A stretch of 64,000 nt of DNA from Convolutriloba macropyga (lineage: Eukaryota), in NCBI RefSeq assembly GCF_964194025.1, contig NC_134473.1:53568001-53632000 (forward strand). The letters run 5' to 3'. Shown one piece after another: positions 29,521-40,804 of the stretch (position 1 is the first letter of the stretch; each line of letters opens with the position of its first letter). Made by a program: the position numbers and the translations under genes. The notes beneath the pieces are model-generated. The model was not told where the DNA came from, made no database searches, and worked only from the letters and a program-made list of their open reading frames with translations.

Positions 29521-30845
29521 ACCGACAAAACGCCGGAAGAATTGCTCTCGAACGACTAGTGGGAGCTCTAATCAATTGCAGCCTGCTTCAGTCGTGGGGG
29601 GGGCTAAATGGGACTAAGAAAATCAATAGTGACTACTTTCTCCATTTGACTACTTTCTTTTGAAATCTTTCACTTGACTTCTTTTGAAATCTTTCAGGCT
29701 GTTGTAGCTCACCTCGGTTCGGATTTGTGCATGCAGAGCCATATAAGAGTACTGGCAAAATTAGTGACTTGTAGAGTCCGAGCTCGATCTCTTGTCTTAC
29801 TTGAAGAGCTATGTTTCGTCGAAGTAGGTAGAGTACTTTGTTCGCTTTTTTCAGTCGTTCTTCGATATGTGTCTTCCACGTCAGGTCATGGGAAACATAG
29901 ATGCCGTAATCTTTGATGACTTTGGATGACTCTAGTTTAGTGCCCATAAGCTCGTAATTTTGTGTTTGACCTCTTATGCTCAGCTTTGCACATTTGTCCA
30001 TGGCTAATTTCATTTTATTTTCGTTTACCCACTGTTCAATACCATTGAGATTGTTTTGAACTTGCCAAAACGTTTTCTTCACTGCAAGAATTTTTAGGTC
30101 ATCCGCGAAGATAAATGGGTCAGAGAAAACTAACACATCAGGTAGGTCATATTGCACGATCTATTATCAAGTGAACTAGGCGTACTGTACTTAGACAAAG
30201 CGTTCAACAAAGTATCACACAACCAACCGCTCAAAAATCTGGAAGAATTGGGTCTAGGAGGCAACTCACAGAATTTGCTTTCGTCTTATCTCCTGGGACC
30301 GAAAATAGTTAGTCTCTATCTCTGAACAGAACTCTGACGTCATTACTGTCACAACCGCTGCTCCACAAGGATCCATTCTACGCCAAATGATGTTTTTGTT
30401 AACGACCTTCCAGACGATTGAAGAAATCCAACAAGGTTGGCTTTTGCATCTAACTTTAAGATCATGGCATGCTCGAAACGTGAAACTCTGCGAATGCTAT
30501 TCAACTCTGGTGTGAATAAATGCTTCTGAATGTTGGGAAATGCAATCTGCAAATTCTAAGGGCAATGCGCAGACCAACCCAGAAAGACCTTGGCTTGATT
30601 ATTGCAAGCAGCTTGACCTGGAAAACTGTCCCCCCTCCCCGAAATCTACATCAGCGCTTTTCCAGATAAAGAACATAACCGACTAAACGTCGGAAGAATT
30701 GCTCTCAAACGACTAGTGGGAGCTCTAATGAATTTCAGCCTGCTTCAGTCGTGGGGGGGGGGGCTAAATGGGACTAAGAAAATCAATAGTGGGCTTCAAA
30801 TAACCGCATTAGAGGTTAACATATACCACTATTAAGATTTAAAGT
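28801..30845. repeat. Local duplication (28801-29520 repeated at 30150-30845) flanking a ~520-bp copy (29631-30151) of the neighbouring LINE segment 31910-32391
   Basis: Near-identical sequence blocks; ORFs 29001-29204 vs 30349-30552 and 29633-30157 vs 31498-32256 give matching translations. Confidence 0.92.
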
Positions 30846-31497: not shown

Positions 31498-34312
31498 TTA
31501 GAAAATTGTCCTATTATTTCTGCAGTTCTGACAGTCACAGCATAGATGCCAGCTACAGATGTTATTTTCGTCGAATCGCTCGTTTACAAACTTCCACATG
31601 AAATTTAAAACTCGATTTTTAAGACCTTTTTTCGTATTAAATTCAATGTAATTTTCTATTCGATTTGCTAGCCTGCATGTACGGAAAAAGAAATCATTTC
31701 TAGCCTTTTCAGTTCTGGTTTTCGGGAGCTTGAATAATTCATTTGTTCTCCCTTTTTCTGAATTTTGTTTCAGCATTGGTAAAAAGCTATCGTCTTCTGT
31801 CAATTTCGATAAAAGTAGAATGTCATTTAGTTGCATGAACATTGGTAGTGGTAGTATGTTAAGAAGTCTCAGTTGATTTGGATACGGCATGACTTTTTGT
31901 CCAAGGATCCATTTGACTACTTTCTTTTGAAATCTTTCAAGCTGTTGTAGCTCACCTCGGTTCGGATTTGTGCATGCAGAGCCATATAAGAGTACTGGCA
32001 AAATTAGTGACTTGTAGAGTCCGAGCTCGATCTCTTGTCTTACTTGAAGAGCTATGTTTCGTCGAAGTAGGTAGAGTACTTTGTTCGCTTTTTTCAGTCG
32101 TTCTTCGATATGTGTCTTCCACGTCAGGTCATGGGAAACATAGATGCCGTGATCTTTGATGACTTTGGATGACTCTAATTTAGTGCCCATAAGCTCGTAA
32201 TTTTGTGTTTGACCTCTTATGCTCAGCTTTGCACATTTGTCCAAGGCTAATTTCATTTTATTTTCGTTTACCCACTGTTCAATACCATTGGTTGTTTTGA
32301 ACTTGCCAAAACGTTTTCTTCACTGCAAGAATTTTTAGGTCATCCGCGAAGATAAATGGGTCAGAGAAAACTAACACATCAGGTAGGTCATTGATGAATA
32401 TGCAAAACAGGAGTGGTCCGAGAAGAGAACCTTGGGGTACCCCACTTGTTACATCTAAAGTTTCCGATCTTGTGTTGTCTACCCGAACGAATTGTTTCCT
32501 ATTGTCTAATTAGTCAACGATAATTTCTAATAGGCAACCTCCCACTCCAATATTTGCAACTTTTTGTACAAGCTCAAAATGCGGCACTTTGTCGAAAGCT
32601 TTGGAGAAATCTGTGTAGAATGCTACAATTTCGTTGCTTGATTCGTTATCGAGTGCGTCGTGAATTGATTTCAAGAAGGATAGCGTATTTGTATTAACTG
32701 AGCGTTTTTTAACAAATTCATGTTGGTGTTCTGTTAGGAATTTTTCGAAGTGAGCGTATAAAGCTGAACAAATGCATTTCTCAAAAACTTTACTGTCAAT
32801 GTCTAAAAGAGAGCCTGTCGGTAACTTTCTACTTTCCGTCTGTCATCTTTTTTGTAGATTGGTGTCACAGCTGCAATTTTCCAGGAGTTTGGGATTTTTC
32901 TCAGTCGTTTTATCTGCTTGAAAAGTACATTTAAATTCTTACTTGTTTCGCGTGCTGTACGTTGGAAAAAATGCAGGCGGTATGCCATTTGGGCCTCGCG
33001 ACATTGTGGCATCTAGCGAAAGAAGTATTTCGTAGATTGCTTTCTTTGAGATTTCGAAGTTTGTAATTTCAGGATTTCTCAATTTTACATCTTGTATACT
33101 GAAAGGAATTTTGGGTGAGAACACTGAGTGAAAGAACTCGTTCATCATGTTGACTTGCTCTTGCATTTTTGTGCTCTGTTGATTTTCTTTGATTAGTAAT
33201 TTTGGAAGGCTGGGTGATTTTTTCAGGCTTTTCAAGTGTTTGAAGATTGTACCGGTATTTCCTGCACGCATGATTTTCTCCTGATATTCAATCCTGTCCA
33301 GTTCCGATGATTCTATCAATTGGTTTTCAAGTTTATGAACTTCTTGTTTTCGATAACTTGTGGGTTTTTCGGATAAGAGTCGGTTTTGGGTTTGTAGTCT
33401 CTTCATGTTGTAAGAAGTGAAACTTGATATCCAGGGAGGTATACTTTGTCGGTGTCTAGTTCTTTTGGGGACGTGGACCTCGAATATTTGATCCATGTAC
33501 TGGTAAAATTCTTCGCATATGTTGTTTATGTTAGTGAAGCAAACTGGTTTGAAGGGTTCAGTACTTAAAATATTATTTATGCTTTCGTAGTCAGCGTTTC
33601 CGAAACTTCTAAAATTTCCAAGAGTTTCTTTGGCGTATTGGCGTGGACATTCTAGTGTTAACTGGATTGATTTATGATTGAGGAAAATTTCTCGTCGAGA
33701 TGTGCCACCAAATTACAATTTTTGTAAAATGCTACATCTAGAGTGTTCTGCCCACAGGTGGGGAAGTTTATCATTTGTCTGTATAGGGATTCCTCAAACA
33801 ATTCAATGACTTCGTTTTCTTCTTCATTTGTACTTGCTAGAGTTTTCCAGTTAACATCAGGACAGTTTATATCCCCACATAAAATGGTCATTCTTGATTT
33901 AGGAATGATTTTAAGGAGTTTTTTGGAAATCGTTAACCTCGTAACGGTACGGGCTAGTTCTTGGGGGGTTGTAAAAGGCACAAATAAAAATTTCGTTCTC
34001 AGCTAATTGTATTTTGCAGACAAGACTAGAATCCGGTTGCTCAGAAATGACTCTTTCGGAGATGAAGGAGTTCTTTACTGCTATGAGGGCGCCTCCGTGG
34101 GTATTTTTGTCTTGATCCATTTGTCTATCTTGTCGGTAGATGCAATAGTCATTTAGAAATAGTTCAGATGATGGAATGTTATCATTGAGCCAAGTTTCAC
34201 AGAGACATATAACGTTGTAGTCTGAGTTTATTACAGCATTTGCAAACTTAATTCTCCTCTCTACGTTCACAAGGCTCCTTACGTTTAGTTGCAGAATGTT
34301 AACAAGACCTAG
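31498..34312 (-). pseudogene. LINE ORF2: APE endonuclease + reverse transcriptase (several frameshifts/stops)
   Basis: ILQLNVRSL, ICLCETWL, YRQDR..HGGALIAVK, FYNPP, CGDINCP, TLDVAF; [35 protein letters not shown]; C-terminal WHLCCDCQNCR. Confidence 0.95.
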
Positions 34313-35211
34313 TCAGTTTGACTTGGTTTCTACGGAGGCAATCTCCACTTTCGCACCATCGTTGAATAGTTCAAATTTCGAATTTTGAGTTTATCTCGAG
34401 GAACTCCTTCTGTCAACAGTTCTCTTCTCTTTTTCAGAATCAGGTTTTCTTTGAGGGCATCTTCTTTGCTGAGAGCTGGTAGCAAGTAAAAATTTCTCTT
34501 TGCTAATTCCTCTCGATGGTCAATACTTTTGACTAAGGCTAGCCTGGCTTCATGTTCGTTAGCGACCGTTACTAAAAGAGTTCTTGGTTTCTTCCGTTCT
34601 CTCTTGAATTCACCTAGTCGTTTGAGTTCCTTCACTTCAGGCCTAACGCCTATTTCACTCAGTATTTCATTTACTTCGTCAGTTGTGGGGACAAGATTTT
34701 CAGCTTTTGTTTTGTTATGATCTTCAGGGATCCCTTGTATTCTGAAGCTTTGTTTGATGTTGTCGACGCCTTTCTCTTTCTTAATTAACTTTCCAAGTTT
34801 CCTATCGGTCTCCTGTGTGGATTCCACGGAGACCACGGCAGCATACGTTTTATCAACTATTTCACAAGTTATTTTGATGGCGGTTTCTATCTTTTTGTCT
34901 ACAAGCTGAGTCAATCTCTTTTCCATGTTTTTGAGTTGATTGCTAAAGTCCAAATTTTCTATCTTCTCGGTCATGTTCGCCATTGTTCTGCATCTTATGA
35001 ATTTATCTCGCTCGTTTTTGTCCACGCATTCATTGCAGAGAAGCATAATGTTGTTTCAAACATCTATTATCCCGTTGAGGGAGGCCGAGGAAAGTCCTGT
35101 GCAAATTGTCGTCATGTGTATATGACAGTTGCAGGCAACGCATGTATATGTTTTCTCTTGTGCCTGTATTGGCTTGTTACAGGTCTTACAATTTTTTCCC
35201 ATTTGTTTCAT
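34313..35211 (-). pseudogene. LINE ORF1 with N-terminal PHD finger, coiled coil and RRM-like region
   Basis: ATG at 35211 gives CKTC..CVAC.CHIH...C...CNEC (C4HC3 spacing), with one in-frame TGA at ~35057. It continues through FRIQGIPE, KRLGEFK and KPRTLLVT. An apparent 1-nt deletion lies near 34372. Confidence 0.88.
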
Positions 35212-35472
35212 AAGCTCTGATCAATTCCAATTGAACTTAATCAGCAGGAGTTTCACAAAATAATTTGATGAAGACTTAAATTTTTGATCGATTCCAACTG
35301 AACTGAATCAATAGGATTTTCACAAAAATTTTGAATAGAAATTGCGATAGGGCTTAACAAAAGCTAAACGATTTTGCTTAAATTGCCGACTGGGACTGAA
35401 AACTGGTTTTGATCAATTCCAATTGAACTCAATCAATAGGAATTTACAAAACCAACTTAGTGCTAGACTTAC

Positions 35473-36060
35473 TCAAATTTTGGCTGCGTTTCGTTTCTTT
35501 TGCTTTTTCTTTCGTTGCTGTTGAGACGGGCTGTGTTTCTTTTTGATAATTGCTTTTAGATTGTCGCCGTGATTTCGTACAATAGTCAGGGTTTTGATTT
35601 CGAGATGTGGTGCAAGATGTAGTTGGCTGTAGCTGCGAACAAGTTCTTTGTCCTTTTGCTTTCGCCTCGAGAGAAGGTCCTTTACGATGTGTAGAACAGG
35701 TATTCCCGTTCCCTTCAGCTCTTTGTAAACGTCTGGTGCTCCTTCTCTTACGCAGTAAACTATTCCAACTACTTTATGCTTGATATTCTTGATTTCGTTC
35801 ACAAGTTGTTCTGGGGTAAGTGGCTTTCTGGGGTCTTTGCGGGGGCTTGTCACAGAGTTATTGATTAGATCGTGCCAAATAATCAACTGCTCGTTTTTCG
35901 GTATCAATCGAAGTCGTTTTTGAATAATTGACTTATCTTGAGCTCCTCGGTGAAGATTGTATCCTGGCTTCGTGATCACTTGTCTGGATAATCGCTTCTT
36001 GATGTTTGTCCACCTCTCCAAAGAATGGTGAAGAGAACTTGCTCCAATAACAATTACCAT
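35473..36060 (-). CDS. ORF0 of the LINE: SGNH/GDSL esterase-like protein with a basic C-terminal tail
   Basis: Intact 195-aa ORF. VIVIGASSL (block I Ser), KPG (block II), LIIWHDLINN (block III-like) and SQLHL (block V His) occur in SGNH order. Confidence 0.65.
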   Translation of the reverse strand: MVIVIGASSLHHSLERWTNIKKRLSRQVITKPGYNLHRGAQDKSIIQKRLRLIPKNEQLIIWHDLINNSVTSPRKDPRKPLTPEQLVNEIKNIKHKVVGIVYCVREGAPDVYKELKGTGIPVLHIVKDLLSRRKQKDKELVRSYSQLHLAPHLEIKTLTIVRNHGDNLKAIIKKKHSPSQQQRKKKQKKRNAAKI

Positions 36061-36585
36061 TTACAAACAAGGGCCACCACGGCAGCCCTGAACAAACATT
36101 ATAACCTATTTAATAAGCTATTTAATAAGTTTATCGCAACAAAATTAGGCTGGGTTCAGAGAGGGAAAAGATGCTCTAGCAGACTATTTTACTAGAGAAC
36201 AGAAAAAGACCTGATGAAACCTGTAGTCTTTCCCTTTATAGCCCAGCGTGTAACCCCCATTACCGAAAATATAAATAGGGGCTATAATTTTTGAGGGCGG
36301 GGCAAACACATGAAGGACTCGCAAAAATTGAACTGCTTCACGTTGGTCACGAAGTAGACTTTTCGTTTAAAAAATTGTCCCATCAAACTTTTTTGATCGA
36401 CTTTAGTTGTAAATTGAAAATTTCAGTGACACATTTATAACTTATGTTTAGGTATAATAACTCTGCTTCGTGTATTTCTTCGATAAGAATTTCCTAATTA
36501 AATTTCAGAGAAGTGTGTAACCGGACAAAACATTAACTTTTACGCATGTACTACAGTACTTATCTAATAATTAATTACTTCTTAC

Positions 36586-37299: not shown

Positions 37300-39550
37300 A
37301 TTGCGCACTAGGAATATTCAGCTAAAGTTAGAGAGTTAAATGAAATTAATTTTAAAGAATAAATTTATAAGAAGATGGAAATAGCATGTACAATGCTTTC
37401 ATAAACGTTTTCAGTACTACTCAAGAGTTCCACGCCCCACTTATAAAAAGCTTTCAACCAGAAAGAAAAATTGCTGAAAAAACCTTGGCTGACAAAAGAG
37501 TTGAGAGAAGAAATCGCCAAAAAACATAGAAATTTTTTAATATCTGGAAAAATAACCCATCGGAGCAAGCGCATACCATTTTCAAATATCAGAGAAATTT
37601 AGTTAATAGGCGTTTAAAAACAGCCCAAAACGAGTTTTGCAAACAATTTTTCAAAGAACTACCAACAAGTAAAGAACAATTTCATCAAAAAAAGAATTGG
37701 CAAAGCAAGGGAGTGTCTCGTTATAGACAAACTAGTCGACGGTGAAACAGAAGTAGAAAATGAACTTGATATTGCAAATTTTCTCAATAGAAGTTTTCAA
37801 AAACTAGGCTTATACAATGGACAATATGTGAACGCTCCAAATATTTCTCGCATAGAAGTTAGGGAAAAGTTTTGCTTCAGAACAGTTACACTAAAAGAAC
37901 TATATGATGCCATCGATTCACTCGACAACAATAAGTCTCCGGGTCCTGGAGTTTTTAATGCTTGGGCAATCAAGGCAGCAAAGCTTTCCAATCGGAACCC
38001 ATTTGCAATTTGTTTTTAACACATGCATTAGTCAAAATATTTTCCCGGAAAATTTAAAAATTGCTTTCATTAGTCCGGTCTACAAAAAAGTGGACGTAAA
38101 AATTTGCGAGAACTATAGGCCTATCTCAATTACTCCAATGTTTGCAAAAATCTTTGAGTGTACACTTTTCAATCAGGTTAACGAATTTATACAAAAATAA
38201 AAAATTTTGAACGGTACACAGTTTGGATTTCAAAAACATAAGTCTTCTACAGATGCTGTTTTACACTTAATCGAAGCATTACAAGAAAATTATGATAACT
38301 TAAAAATTTCAGTTGCTGTTTTTATTGATCTAGCTAAAGCATTTACTTCAATATCGCACGAAATTTTTCTCAAAAAAATTGAAGCTTACGGTTTTTCAGA
38401 GAGTGCAGTTGAATTATATGCTTAATTTCTTAAAAACAGACAGCAGTGTGTTAAGATAAATGGTGCTTCCTCAGAATGGTTGGAAGCAAATCATGGTGTT
38501 CCACAGGGAACGGTTTTAGGGCCACTAGTTTTTCTTCTCTGTATTAATGTTTTTTCAGAAAAAGTACAAGGAAACTTCGACATAATTCAATTTGCTGATG
38601 ACACGAGTTTCCATTTCAGCAGAAGCAATGTCAGCGAACTGGAAAAATATGTTTTTGAAATACTGGAGAAAACAGATAATTATCAAATGCAATACAAATT
38701 AACCATGAATACCGGTAAAACTGAACTTCTTTGCGTCTCGAAGGAACATGAAAATATTGATCCAATAGTTTTTCGGGGACAAGAAATTAAACCACAAAAT
38801 TACTGCAGATACTTGGGTATAATAATCGATTCTAAACTAAATTTTCATGTACAACTCAACAAAGTCCTATCAAATATGGCCACAGCGATGAGATCCATAT
38901 ACCTTTTACGTTATCAGTCTGGAAGCACGATTGATGCTATTCAAATCCCTAGCCCTTTCTCATTTAACATTCAGAGCTCTTTTTTTTCAGAACTTGAATT
39001 TCTCTGCAATTCAGCGAATTAATCGACAAATCAATTGGGGTATTAAAGTTTTCTATATGAGAAAAAATTGATAGATCTACAGATCTCTTAGTAAAATCTG
39101 ACATTTTGCCTGCAGAAATTTTAATAAGCCAGATGAGTGTTTCAAAACTTAGGAATGATATTTCAATATTGAAAACACACGGCACTGAGAGTTTTTGTCT
39201 AAGTGGTAATGTCTTAGTAAGAAAAAACAACAGAACTGAACAGCTAATTCTCTTAAGGTCGAGCAGTCGATCAATACAAAAAAGAAGCATCCAAAAGTGG
39301 ACTAAAATTCCGCGTGATGTCCGGACTATCAGATCAAAATCAATGTTTAAACGCATGTTAAAACATCATCTGCTCCAACAATTCAAACTTGTACCGTTAG
39401 AAAGGAACGTTGGTGGCTTCGAAAGTTATTTTTAACTTTAGAAAACGGAACCACTAATTTTTTTTTAACATTGTACTGATTTTGTTTATATAATTTTAAA
39501 CTTGTAATATTTAAACCTGGGTTATATTTTCAATTTACTTGTTTGAAAAA
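37300..39550 (+). mobile_element. 5'-truncated decayed LINE (RT domain; CR1/L2/Crack group)
   Basis: KSPGPG, PVYKK..CENYRPISI, QFGFQKHKSS, FIDLAKAF, GVPQGTVLGPLVF, QFADDT, RYLGIIIDSKLNF. Confidence 0.92.
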
Positions 39551-39789
39551 AAGAAAGAGTTGTTACAGACGAAAATGAAGAAGTTTTATTGCTTGAGCTG
39601 AATTCATGAGCTGAGGTTTTAATTATGCTCGTTTGTTGCGGTCATATCAATGGTTAATTTATCTTGGGTAATTTTGCCAATTTTCTCTAATCGGTTTCGG
39701 ATTTTCTCATGGTTATTCTCACCCGCATTGGTCCCTGTTAGTTACATTAAGAGATTACAGGTTTAAATGCTTGACGAATCACGTTAAGA

Positions 39790-40804
39790 ACAAACATTCC
39801 TTGACGTATCCCGTCAAGGTCAAAATCCGAGATGATTCCCACCAGTGACAATTGGGGTCCCACACGGATCACTGCTCGGGCCGATCTTATTTTGCATATA
39901 CATCAACAACCTGTCAGATGCCCTCAGATTTGGCGTACCCTTGCTCGCGGATGACCTAAAAATACTCCACATTTGAACACCAGCAGACCAAGTACAGAGT
40001 AACCTCGACGCACTGGAAGACTGAGTCACCCAAAACAAAATGGGTCTAGCTATTGAAAAATGCGCCAAAATTTTGTTCAAAGGTCCAGAAAGCCACTTCT
40101 ACATGTGTGGAAGTCTCCTCCAAACCTCAGCTGGTGTAAAGAACTTAGGGATTCGGTTTATCCACTTAGAAGAAAGAATGAAGAAAGCTAACCGAGTCTT
40201 CTATTCCCTAAGAAATGTAGCCTTTAAAGTTGATATGTGCATCAAACTGAGACTTTACAAATCGATGATTCTACCAGTTCTAATGTACGGATCCTCGTGC
40301 TGTAACTTAAACCGAGGAGATATGCGAAACTTGGAACGGTTTCAACGAAAGTTTGTGTCCTGGATAACAAATAGCAAGACATTGAGTTACATCGAACAAC
40401 TACGTTTGTCAAATCTACTACCCTTGCCAATGTACTATCAGGTCAATGGTCTTCTACTACTATCAAGTCTTCAACAAATTCAACCGACAAATACATAACA
40501 GCTGGTGCTGCCTGGAAACAGATCAATGAGAAGAGACGATTACTTTGATTTAACGAAAAAACGACTCGAAAAATCCACCCAAAGTATAACCAACAGACTT
40601 CATTACAGCTTTGACTTCGGAAATCAACACGGCCTAAAACACAGAATTCTAAAGCAGATGTGGAATGATATTATGATTCGGTACAAACGAGAAAAAGTCT
40701 ACACGTGGCAGATCTGTTGTGACTGTCAACACTGCAGAGACACATTGAATAATTTTTTATAACTGTTTTGATCGGAAGAAATCCCTTCTGTGAAGAAAAT
40801 CCTC

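Follow-up and report, generated by a model that had tools for sequence, protein, structure and literature searches.

The 64,000-nucleotide stretch of the Convolutriloba macropyga genome analysed here (hereafter the window; positions 53,568,001 to 53,632,000 of the forward strand of contig NC_134473.1, assembly GCF_964194025.1) holds a long interspersed nuclear element (LINE), a retrotransposon without long terminal repeats (LTRs), in which an additional open reading frame (ORF), ORF0, precedes ORF1 and ORF2. We find that the ORF0 protein (ORF0p) has a predicted SGNH-hydrolase fold, and that the ORF0 family travels as a 5′ accessory gene in at least two unrelated retroelement classes of this genome, namely several LINE lineages and BEL/Pao LTR elements. 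The evidence lies in the structure of the gene, its linkage to the element, the fold, the conservation of a Ser/Gly/Asn/His set and the constraint between lineages. We hold with good confidence that ORF0 is the genuine first cistron of a LINE of the apurinic/apyrimidinic endonuclease (APE) type, whose ORF1 would encode a PHD finger and an RNA recognition motif (RRM). The broader reading that we put forward, with a probability of roughly 0.35, is that this SGNH family is a portable 5′ accessory cassette, long kept at the head of LINEs and BEL/Pao elements, present in at least one other organism and needed for the propagation of its carriers; the LINE RNA would be tricistronic, and translation would reach its downstream genes through reinitiation, shunting or internal entry, with the help of the conserved spacer hairpins.

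Organization of the element

The whole element lies on the minus strand, and its parts are the following (positions are those of the window, and UTR stands for untranslated region).

36118..36151, minus strand: LINE leader, about 31-33 nt, a motif common to otherwise different ORF0-bearing LINE lineages
36061..36105, minus strand: 5′ UTR, holding an upstream ORF and the conserved motif GGCWGCCGUGGUGGCC
35473..36060, minus strand: ORF0, 195 codons plus stop, predicted SGNH-fold protein
35212..35472, minus strand: ORF0-ORF1 spacer, 261 nt, with three hairpin-forming units of about 58 nt
34330..35211, minus strand: ORF1, with a putative PHD finger, a long helix and an L1-type RRM-like domain; disabled
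31498..34312, minus strand: ORF2, APE endonuclease and reverse transcriptase (RT); broken

The first-pass annotation, made from the letters alone, had reported an uninterrupted frame of 195 residues, co-oriented with ORF1 and about 260 bp upstream of it, beside a disabled ORF1 and ORF2. In our ORF read of the window, the frame indeed runs from its ATG to its stop without a break, in the same orientation as ORF1. The distance also stands, at 261 nt, and only the ORF1 edge had been misplaced by one position (35212), the ORF1 ATG being read at 35211. The disablements are real as well: ORF1 is interrupted by an in-frame TGA at 35058-35056 and, relative to the family, by a 1-nt gap near 34372, and ORF2, which ends in a stop codon at 31500-31498, has undergone at least five frame changes. 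Pfam scans give an Exo_endo_phos_2 match for the window ORF2 (E 8.6e-7) and an RVT_1 match for an intact relative (E 9e-25). An (AAC)7 run located 3′ of ORF2, at 31450-31431 on the minus strand, may be the 3′ end of the LINE. In another genomic copy (L031:2994-3971, oriented; compare window ~34400-34270), the end of ORF1 continues into the endonuclease as one open frame of 325 residues.

ORF0 is linked to the LINE in close and in divergent copies

A six-frame search of the organism's own assembly (1.18 Gb) with ORF0 gave 2,777 first-look candidates, of which 150 were scored and all 150 were significant. The 30 best loci, one of them the window itself, were fetched and compared by blastn (L-numbers in this text label the fetched loci). 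Twenty-eight of the 30 align to the window continuously across ORF0 and the spacer and on into ORF1; the majority of these begin at window ~36107-36150, the majority extend into ORF2, and the length of their spacers differs solely by the number of ~58-nt units. Moreover, the depth of public contigs of the same organism falls about 16- to 21-fold between 36075-36161 and 36162-36248, and these contigs diverge from the window at 36107-36112. The drop and the divergence together mark the 5′ edge of the repeat, and indicate some 16-21 near-identical copies of the subfamily.

Copies were also picked by a search with ORF1, so that their choice was independent of ORF0 (n = 24, at least 79% identity, all holding the start of the searched ORF1 part). 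An ORF0 match lies just upstream in at least 21 of these 24 copies, counting the ORF0 matches listed. Furthermore, six divergent LINE lineages (L032, L034, L035, L036, L042 and L046), whose ORF0 proteins are 42-59% identical in amino acids to that of the window, keep the order ORF0, PHD ORF1, APE/RT. The check that the first-pass annotation had proposed, whether ORF0 always sits upstream of this ORF1/ORF2 pair, therefore comes out in its favour, and full-length copies beginning at ORF1, which it had named as evidence to the contrary, are found neither among the nearest copies nor in the divergent lineages. Since leader, ORF0, ORF1 and ORF2 form one unbroken stretch in the copies, the retrotransposed RNA would be tricistronic. 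Linkage, together with the predicted fold described below, thus supports the proposal of a separate esterase cistron in a tricistronic non-LTR element.

ORF0 encodes a predicted SGNH-fold protein

An AlphaFold2 model of ORF0p, built on 19 relatives, has a predicted local distance difference test score (pLDDT) of 87.5 and a predicted template modelling score (pTM) of 0.83. We compared it with 48,161 representative solved chains, using an aligner independent of Foldseek. The best 50 matches (Z 10.8-6.8) are nearly all SGNH/GDSL hydrolases or SGNH-fold domains, with one clear exception, an alpha/beta-hydrolase chain at rank 49; they span 134-166 residues with a root-mean-square deviation (rmsd) of 2.7-6.2, the best reaching Z 10.8 over 155 residues. 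The matched types comprise acetyl-xylan esterases, GDSL lipases, platelet-activating factor (PAF) acetylhydrolase, sialate O-acetylesterase and OatA/PatB, as well as the OSK domain of Oskar, a viral haemagglutinin-esterase and phage tail proteins. With Foldseek alone the result was borderline (best match the GDSL lipase 1z8h, probability 0.99, E 1.3e-3, TM ~0.4), and re-alignment of its list gave 74 chains at Z >= 8, which are SGNH enzymes. The model shows the three-layer alpha/beta/alpha fold with five parallel strands that characterizes the SGNH superfamily. Structure prediction, which the first-pass annotation had called for, therefore speaks for an SGNH fold.

The annotation had also listed SGNH-like blocks in order, and these fall at meaningful places in ORF0p: GASS at residues 6-9, PG at 32-33, LINN at 65-68 and QLHL at 146-149. 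In the model, G-A-S8-S9 follows beta1 (strand 2-6), G33 comes after beta2, W-H63-D64-x-x-N67-N68 after beta3, and H148 lies in the last loop. This order along beta1, beta2, beta3 and the last loop is that of SGNH blocks I, II, III and V, and supports the SGNH reading. Conservation was scored in 70 relatives that are 24-58% identical to the window ORF0p, with the following outcome.

S8: kept in 67 of 70
G33: kept in 65 of 70
H63: kept in 68 of 70
D64: kept in 64 of 70
N67: kept in 61 of 70
N68: kept in 67 of 70
R105: kept in 64 of 70
H148: kept in 67 of 70
E154: kept in 65 of 70

Such conservation takes the ordered blocks beyond chance. Judged from its sequences, the residue set of the family is S-G-N-H without the triad acid, and N67 and N68 are the candidates for the oxyanion residue. 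The Lys/Arg-rich tail that had been noted is present too, with 12 K+R in the last 30 residues (166-195) of a protein whose overall pI is 10.6. This is a family trait, the median pI of the family being 10.5 and the K+R fraction of its tail 0.43.

The family is large. A HMMER profile search of 1.84 billion cluster representatives (clusters at 50% identity) gave at least 908 clusters at E <= 1e-3, of which 566 remain at E <= 1e-10, and the best 150 clusters are nearly all stand-alone proteins of about 110-290 residues, most of them of 185-235. For one distant member, P0082, a search of this genome gives no match at E <= 1e-45, and the family therefore occurs in at least one other organism. No Pfam family matches ORF0 itself or the sets of 19 and 70 relatives that were scanned, and the ORF0 family is too divergent for current sequence and domain models.

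Constraint on ORF0 between lineages, and decay within the subfamily

Constraint was measured as non-synonymous (dN) and synonymous (dS) divergence between lineages. Between lineages dS is saturated and dN is 0.14-0.75; for the window against the other lineages, dN is 0.35-0.68 with saturated synonymous sites, and for L041 against L045, both borne by BEL elements, dN is 0.145 at 79% amino acid identity. The ORF0 family is under constraint between lineages. We rejected intactness within the subfamily as a test of selection, as it is biased: the ORF0 score had served to choose the copies, and the frameshift of the window ORF1 inflates the ORF1 count.

That ORF0 is intact in the window copy while ORF1 and ORF2 are broken could suggest a domesticated or otherwise independently selected host gene lying beside a dead LINE. 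We give this explanation hardly any credence. By depth there are some 16-21 near-identical copies, and ORF0 is always inside the element. Decay in the young subfamily affects ORF0 and ORF1 in like manner: ORF0 carries a stop or a frameshift in 10 of 25 full-length copies, and it is often broken where the ORF1 part is intact, and vice versa. The window ORF0 is itself one codon short of the family majority. Moreover, at 2-5% divergence a frame of only 585 nt is expected to escape disablement. The intact ORF0 of the window reflects its small size, and not domestication.

ORF0 homologues in BEL/Pao LTR elements

About 80 of the 150 scored matches are homologues at 38-40% identity to the window ORF0p. 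The homologues associated with BEL elements are mostly open frames of 209-231 residues (intact examples, 207-212 residues), and they precede long gag-pol frames. The downstream polyproteins contain Peptidase_A17 (E 3e-37 and 8e-39), DUF1759, RVT_1, rve, Integrase_H2C2 and DUF5641; Peptidase_A17, DUF1759, RVT_1, rve and DUF5641 together are the signature of BEL/Pao. In at least 16 loci the ORF0-like gene lies 8.2-8.7 kb upstream of the C-terminus of pol, on the same strand.

A primer-binding-site-like sequence, TGGTCCGCCGACCCGGA, which is complementary to a tRNA 3′ end with its CCA and itself ends in TGG, is found at L040:510, 1 kb upstream of the gene. It recurs at L056:2622, 3 nt after a conserved 3′ block of about 500 nt, with which the element terminates in nine other copies. 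Head-to-tail pairs of BEL elements lie 10.2-10.4 kb apart, with the ORF0-like gene once per unit. A location of the gene inside the BEL LTR was considered and rejected, the gene being present once per tandem unit and downstream of the primer-binding site. The ORF0-like gene is internal to the BEL/Pao elements, between the primer-binding site and gag.

The occurrence of homologues independently of the LINE had been named in advance as a result that would tell against ORF0 as a LINE gene. Taken to the letter, this is what we found; the second carrier, however, is another retroelement, and the homologues are not free host genes. A quick maximum-likelihood tree of four BEL-borne and eight LINE-borne proteins separates the two sets by one branch (Shimodaira-Hasegawa-like approximate likelihood-ratio test, SH-aLRT, 97), and one switch of context is therefore enough for this sample of 12 proteins.

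The family must hence have moved between elements at least once, and this movement, like the single switch in the tree, would also fit another explanation, in which ORF0 came from a different element and was inserted upstream of, or co-opted by, one LINE subfamily, making a recent chimera without any function in retrotransposition. We regard such a chimera as quite improbable, for the layout is old: LINE lineages with ORF0 proteins only 42-59% identical and with saturated dS keep both the layout and the catalytic-type residues. Furthermore, the leader common to these lineages stands upstream of ORF0, and not between ORF0 and ORF1.

Some further features of the BEL/Pao carriers may be recorded here. 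The L040-type family, with at least 150 places that are 96-100% identical over a 200-residue pol segment, many open frames of about 2,280 residues and several head-to-tail pairs, is very young and abundant. In one BEL/Pao family (L041:4-1474, L044:73-1453 and L045:1-1476, oriented with the gene on the plus strand), tandem units of about 27 nt fill 1.2-1.4 kb immediately upstream of the ORF0-like gene. They are preceded by a second array, of ~82-nt period, and the two arrays are in the leader of the element. Minimum-free-energy folds also show a long GC-rich hairpin 4 nt after the ORF0-like stop (L039:2126-2225 and L040:2167-2215), so that a structured RNA would follow the gene in both classes of element.

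Leader, 5′ UTR and spacer hairpins of the LINE

The shared leader motif ends in ...GATAAACTTATTAAATAG and is found in the window (36151-36118), in L026 and in the L029/L046 and L036/L037 types, the sequence downstream of it differing between the LINE lineages. Its last 12 nt are partially repeated at 36117-36106. We considered whether an ORF0-less messenger could arise by internal addition of the leader before ORF1. Two junctions were searched, and no genomic copy has the end of the leader joined to the TTTTCAG site of the spacer or at most 30 nt from the ORF1 ATG; the positive-control pattern, in which the leader end is joined to a window-type ORF0 5′ UTR, was found at 5 genomic places. The idea thus finds no support at the two junctions searched.

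Upstream of ORF0 lies a short ORF (36099-36061, minus strand; 12 codons in the window, 12-13 when L038 and L042 are included), whose TAA abuts the ORF0 ATG (UAAAUG). The same arrangement is seen in the close copies listed and in L038, and an overlapping UGAUG in L042. This upstream ORF may couple the translation of ORF0 to termination and reinitiation. A small hairpin of the 5′ UTR is no more stable than shuffled sequence (z -0.4 to -1.8).

The ~58-nt units of the spacer, at ~35458-35400, 35331-35278 and 35244-35217, have z values of -6.1, -2.9 and -2.3 respectively, and the last of them ends 5 nt before the ORF1 ATG. The hairpin at window 35398-35460 has a folding energy of -21 kcal/mol (z -6.1), and 0 of 200 shuffles fold as well. 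The number of units varies between genomic copies. Hairpins of like build, with other stem sequences, are present in L042 (z -4.9 and -4.4), L034 (-4.4) and L046 (-3.3). These hairpins may serve as binding sites for the basic tail of ORF0p or for the ORF1 protein (ORF1p), or may allow reinitiation or shunting to ORF1. We also observed that a motif located between the spacer hairpins, AGTCCCAGTCG (window ~35398-35385, minus strand), recurs in the spacers of L046, L032, L034 and L035 though the surrounding spacer sequence differs.

The protein encoded by ORF1

The N-terminus of ORF1p shows a Cys4-His-Cys3 pattern (CKTC...CVAC...H...C...CNEC). The PHD fingers of Pygopus and MLL3 are its best matches among PDB sequences, and weak ones (E 0.12-0.7), and a zf-RRPl_C4 match (E 1.4e-5) falls below the cut-off of that model. 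In a low-confidence model of ORF1p (pLDDT 49.5), residues 150-244 form a beta-alpha-beta-beta-alpha-beta unit. Its top three matches are all the RRM of human LINE-1 ORF1p (2w7a, 2ldy and 2yko; Z 7.3, 6.8 and 6.1), the first over 88 residues with an rmsd of 3.1, and ordinary RRMs rank next. The assignment of a PHD finger and an RRM to ORF1p is thus suggestive, and by this model the protein looks complete, with a PHD finger and an L1-type RRM. If it is complete, ORF0 would be a gene additional to ORF1, rather than the esterase part of an ORF1 that had been split.

Other repeats in the window

A 5′-truncated, RT-bearing LINE remnant lies at 37800-40800 on the plus strand, and its C-terminal CCDCQxCR motif is the same as that of the ORF2 studied here. 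Another LINE remnant, an RT fragment, lies at 29636-30160 on the minus strand. A unit of about 200 nt is present twice in the window, at 30555-30352 and at 29207-29004.

Discussion

How might ORF0p serve the elements that carry it? We propose that the protein would be made from the tricistronic RNA of the element and would be an active acyl-esterase with a Ser-His dyad, possibly aided by the conserved E154 or D64. It would help to assemble or to localise the retrotransposition particle on charged membranes, by analogy with the esterase of the ZfL2-1 ORF1p, and its K/R-rich tail may bind the hairpins downstream of the gene.

The principal competitor of an enzymatic ORF0p is a non-enzymatic one, that is, a basic RNA-binding or scaffold module with an SGNH fold, akin to the OSK domain of Drosophila Oskar, which would bind the RNA of the element, for example the hairpins downstream of the gene. 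The absence of the block V Asp in 70 of 70 members, the pI of about 10.5 with the K/R-rich tail, and the stable hairpins found 3′ of the gene in several lineages would all suit such a module. Arginine-rich peptides that bind structured RNA have in fact been proposed for the esterase-type ORF1ps (PMC3905857). Oskar OSK (5a4a, Z 8.6) is itself among the structural matches, and likewise combines an SGNH fold and an incomplete catalytic set with a basic protein, Oskar being linked to RNA granules. Oskar, however, is non-catalytic and its hydrolytic activity is entirely lost (PMC3905857), whereas in the ORF0 family Ser and His are retained by 96% of the members, Gly by 93%, and the two Asn by 87% and 96%, even though the members are very divergent; a structural role alone would need none of these residues. 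Moreover, some SGNH enzymes, those of carbohydrate esterase family 2, use a Ser-His dyad. Binding of RNA and enzymatic activity are also mutually compatible. Overall we consider the purely non-enzymatic module unlikely, if far from negligible, and prefer a first cistron encoding a putative esterase.

Several points weigh against this preferred reading. The block V Asp, which the first-pass annotation had already found missing in the window, is never present in the 70 members: three residues before the His, position 145 is Q, S, R, K, A or T. No Lipase_GDSL or Lipase_GDSL_2 match (Pfam) was found at E <= 1 for the 70 members or at E <= 10 for a set of 19 members, and profile searches of PDB sequences find no chain, the ZfL2-1 esterase included. 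Homology to the SGNH enzymes is thus suggested by the predicted fold and the order of the motifs. The sequence is contained in four public runs; these behave as DNA contigs do, and none is on record as RNA. The three-cistron layout with its conserved hairpins raises the question of how the downstream LINE genes are translated. On the BEL/Pao side, the LTRs are partly delimited, and no copy was seen with both of its LTRs. Finally, the membrane and hairpin-binding roles are drawn by analogy.

Esterase domains in the ORF1 proteins of LINEs were reportedly first described by Kapitonov and Jurka in 2003. Esterase and PHD domains are known inside ORF1 of CR1-like elements (PMC3905857, PMC4120745), and type IV ORF1ps, which carry an esterase, occur in CR1/L2, RTEX and Penelope-like elements (PMC3905857). 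A close counterpart is the ORF1p esterase of the zebrafish element ZfL2-1, with its triad S143, D279 and H282 and its oxyanion residues G165 and N195 (Schneider et al. 2013, PMC3905857). Both proteins would be retroelement-borne SGNH folds encoded upstream of the RT gene, with conserved Ser, Gly, Asn and His, and both are strongly basic with an Arg/Lys-rich peptide. The spacing of the S-G-N-H residues is also comparable (25, 34 and 81 residues in ORF0p, 22, 30 and 87 in ZfL2-1), and a His precedes the Asn by four residues in each (H63/N67 and H191/N195; PMC3905857). H191 and S228 of ZfL2-1 are conserved only in transposon esterases (PMC3905857). In ZfL2-1 H191 is paired with the buried S228, whereas the candidate partner on beta4 of ORF0p is C103 (46 of 70 relatives) and not a Ser.

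The differences are equally clear. The catalytic Asp, D279 in ZfL2-1, is absent from the ORF0 family, profile searches show no sequence similarity between the two, and the basic peptide of ORF0p is C-terminal, unlike that of ZfL2-1. In type IV ORF1ps the esterase is a domain that follows a coiled coil, whereas ORF0p is a separate protein of about 200 residues that starts at beta1 and has no coiled coil. Among the elements in Repbase, an esterase-containing ORF1p never has an RRM or another RNA-binding fold (PMC3905857). Here ORF0 precedes a separate ORF1 that looks complete, of the PHD and RRM type, a pairing with the esterase that was never seen within one ORF1p in Repbase (PMC3905857). The type IV class has no RNA-binding fold in the first protein of the element, and the present LINE would depart from it by an RRM that was called on the low-confidence model of ORF1p.

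Separate esterase genes common to different classes of retroelement in one genome are likewise known from bdelloid rotifers, in the Vesta LTR and Athena Penelope-like elements (Rodriguez et al. 2017, PMC5408684). Their esterase ORF3, which lies downstream of pol in the LTR elements, was found by HHpred and keeps the invariant catalytic residues (PMC5408684). ORF0, in contrast, stands at the 5′ end, before ORF1 or gag, occurs in LINEs and BEL/Pao, and is undetected by the Pfam GDSL models. Among cellular proteins, the alpha subunits of PAF acetylhydrolase Ib and the E. coli TAP/TesA are small single-domain SGNH proteins that rank among the best structural matches, and PAF acetylhydrolase has the highest sequence identity of these (16-17%, Z 8.4-9.0). 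They also served as reference enzymes for ZfL2-1 (PMC3905857). Unlike ORF0p they have a full Ser-Asp-His triad and no retroelement context. Our full-text search of the literature, the coverage of which is incomplete, returned no description of a stand-alone esterase cistron upstream of a LINE ORF1, of an esterase gene upstream of gag in BEL/Pao, or of the ORF0 sequence family. Compared with the known retroelement esterases, what is new here is a separate 5′ cistron that domain models do not detect, that lacks the triad Asp, that is paired with a full ORF1 and that is common to BEL/Pao.

The best current idea for the role of the LINE esterases is membrane targeting (PMC3905857). An esterase that is a separate small protein beside a complete RNA-binding ORF1p, and that has been kept in two unrelated classes of retroelement, would be a cleaner natural experiment on this role. 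Its separateness, the completeness of ORF1p and its presence in both classes argue that the esterase function is distinct from the packaging of RNA, and useful to target-primed as well as to LTR-type replication. As more than 900 clusters are missed by the domain libraries, such ORFs have probably been overlooked in the annotation of transposons. If the SGNH family is indeed a portable cassette, a third protein would take part in the life cycle of LINEs, and the esterase function would have evolved or spread independently of ORF1.

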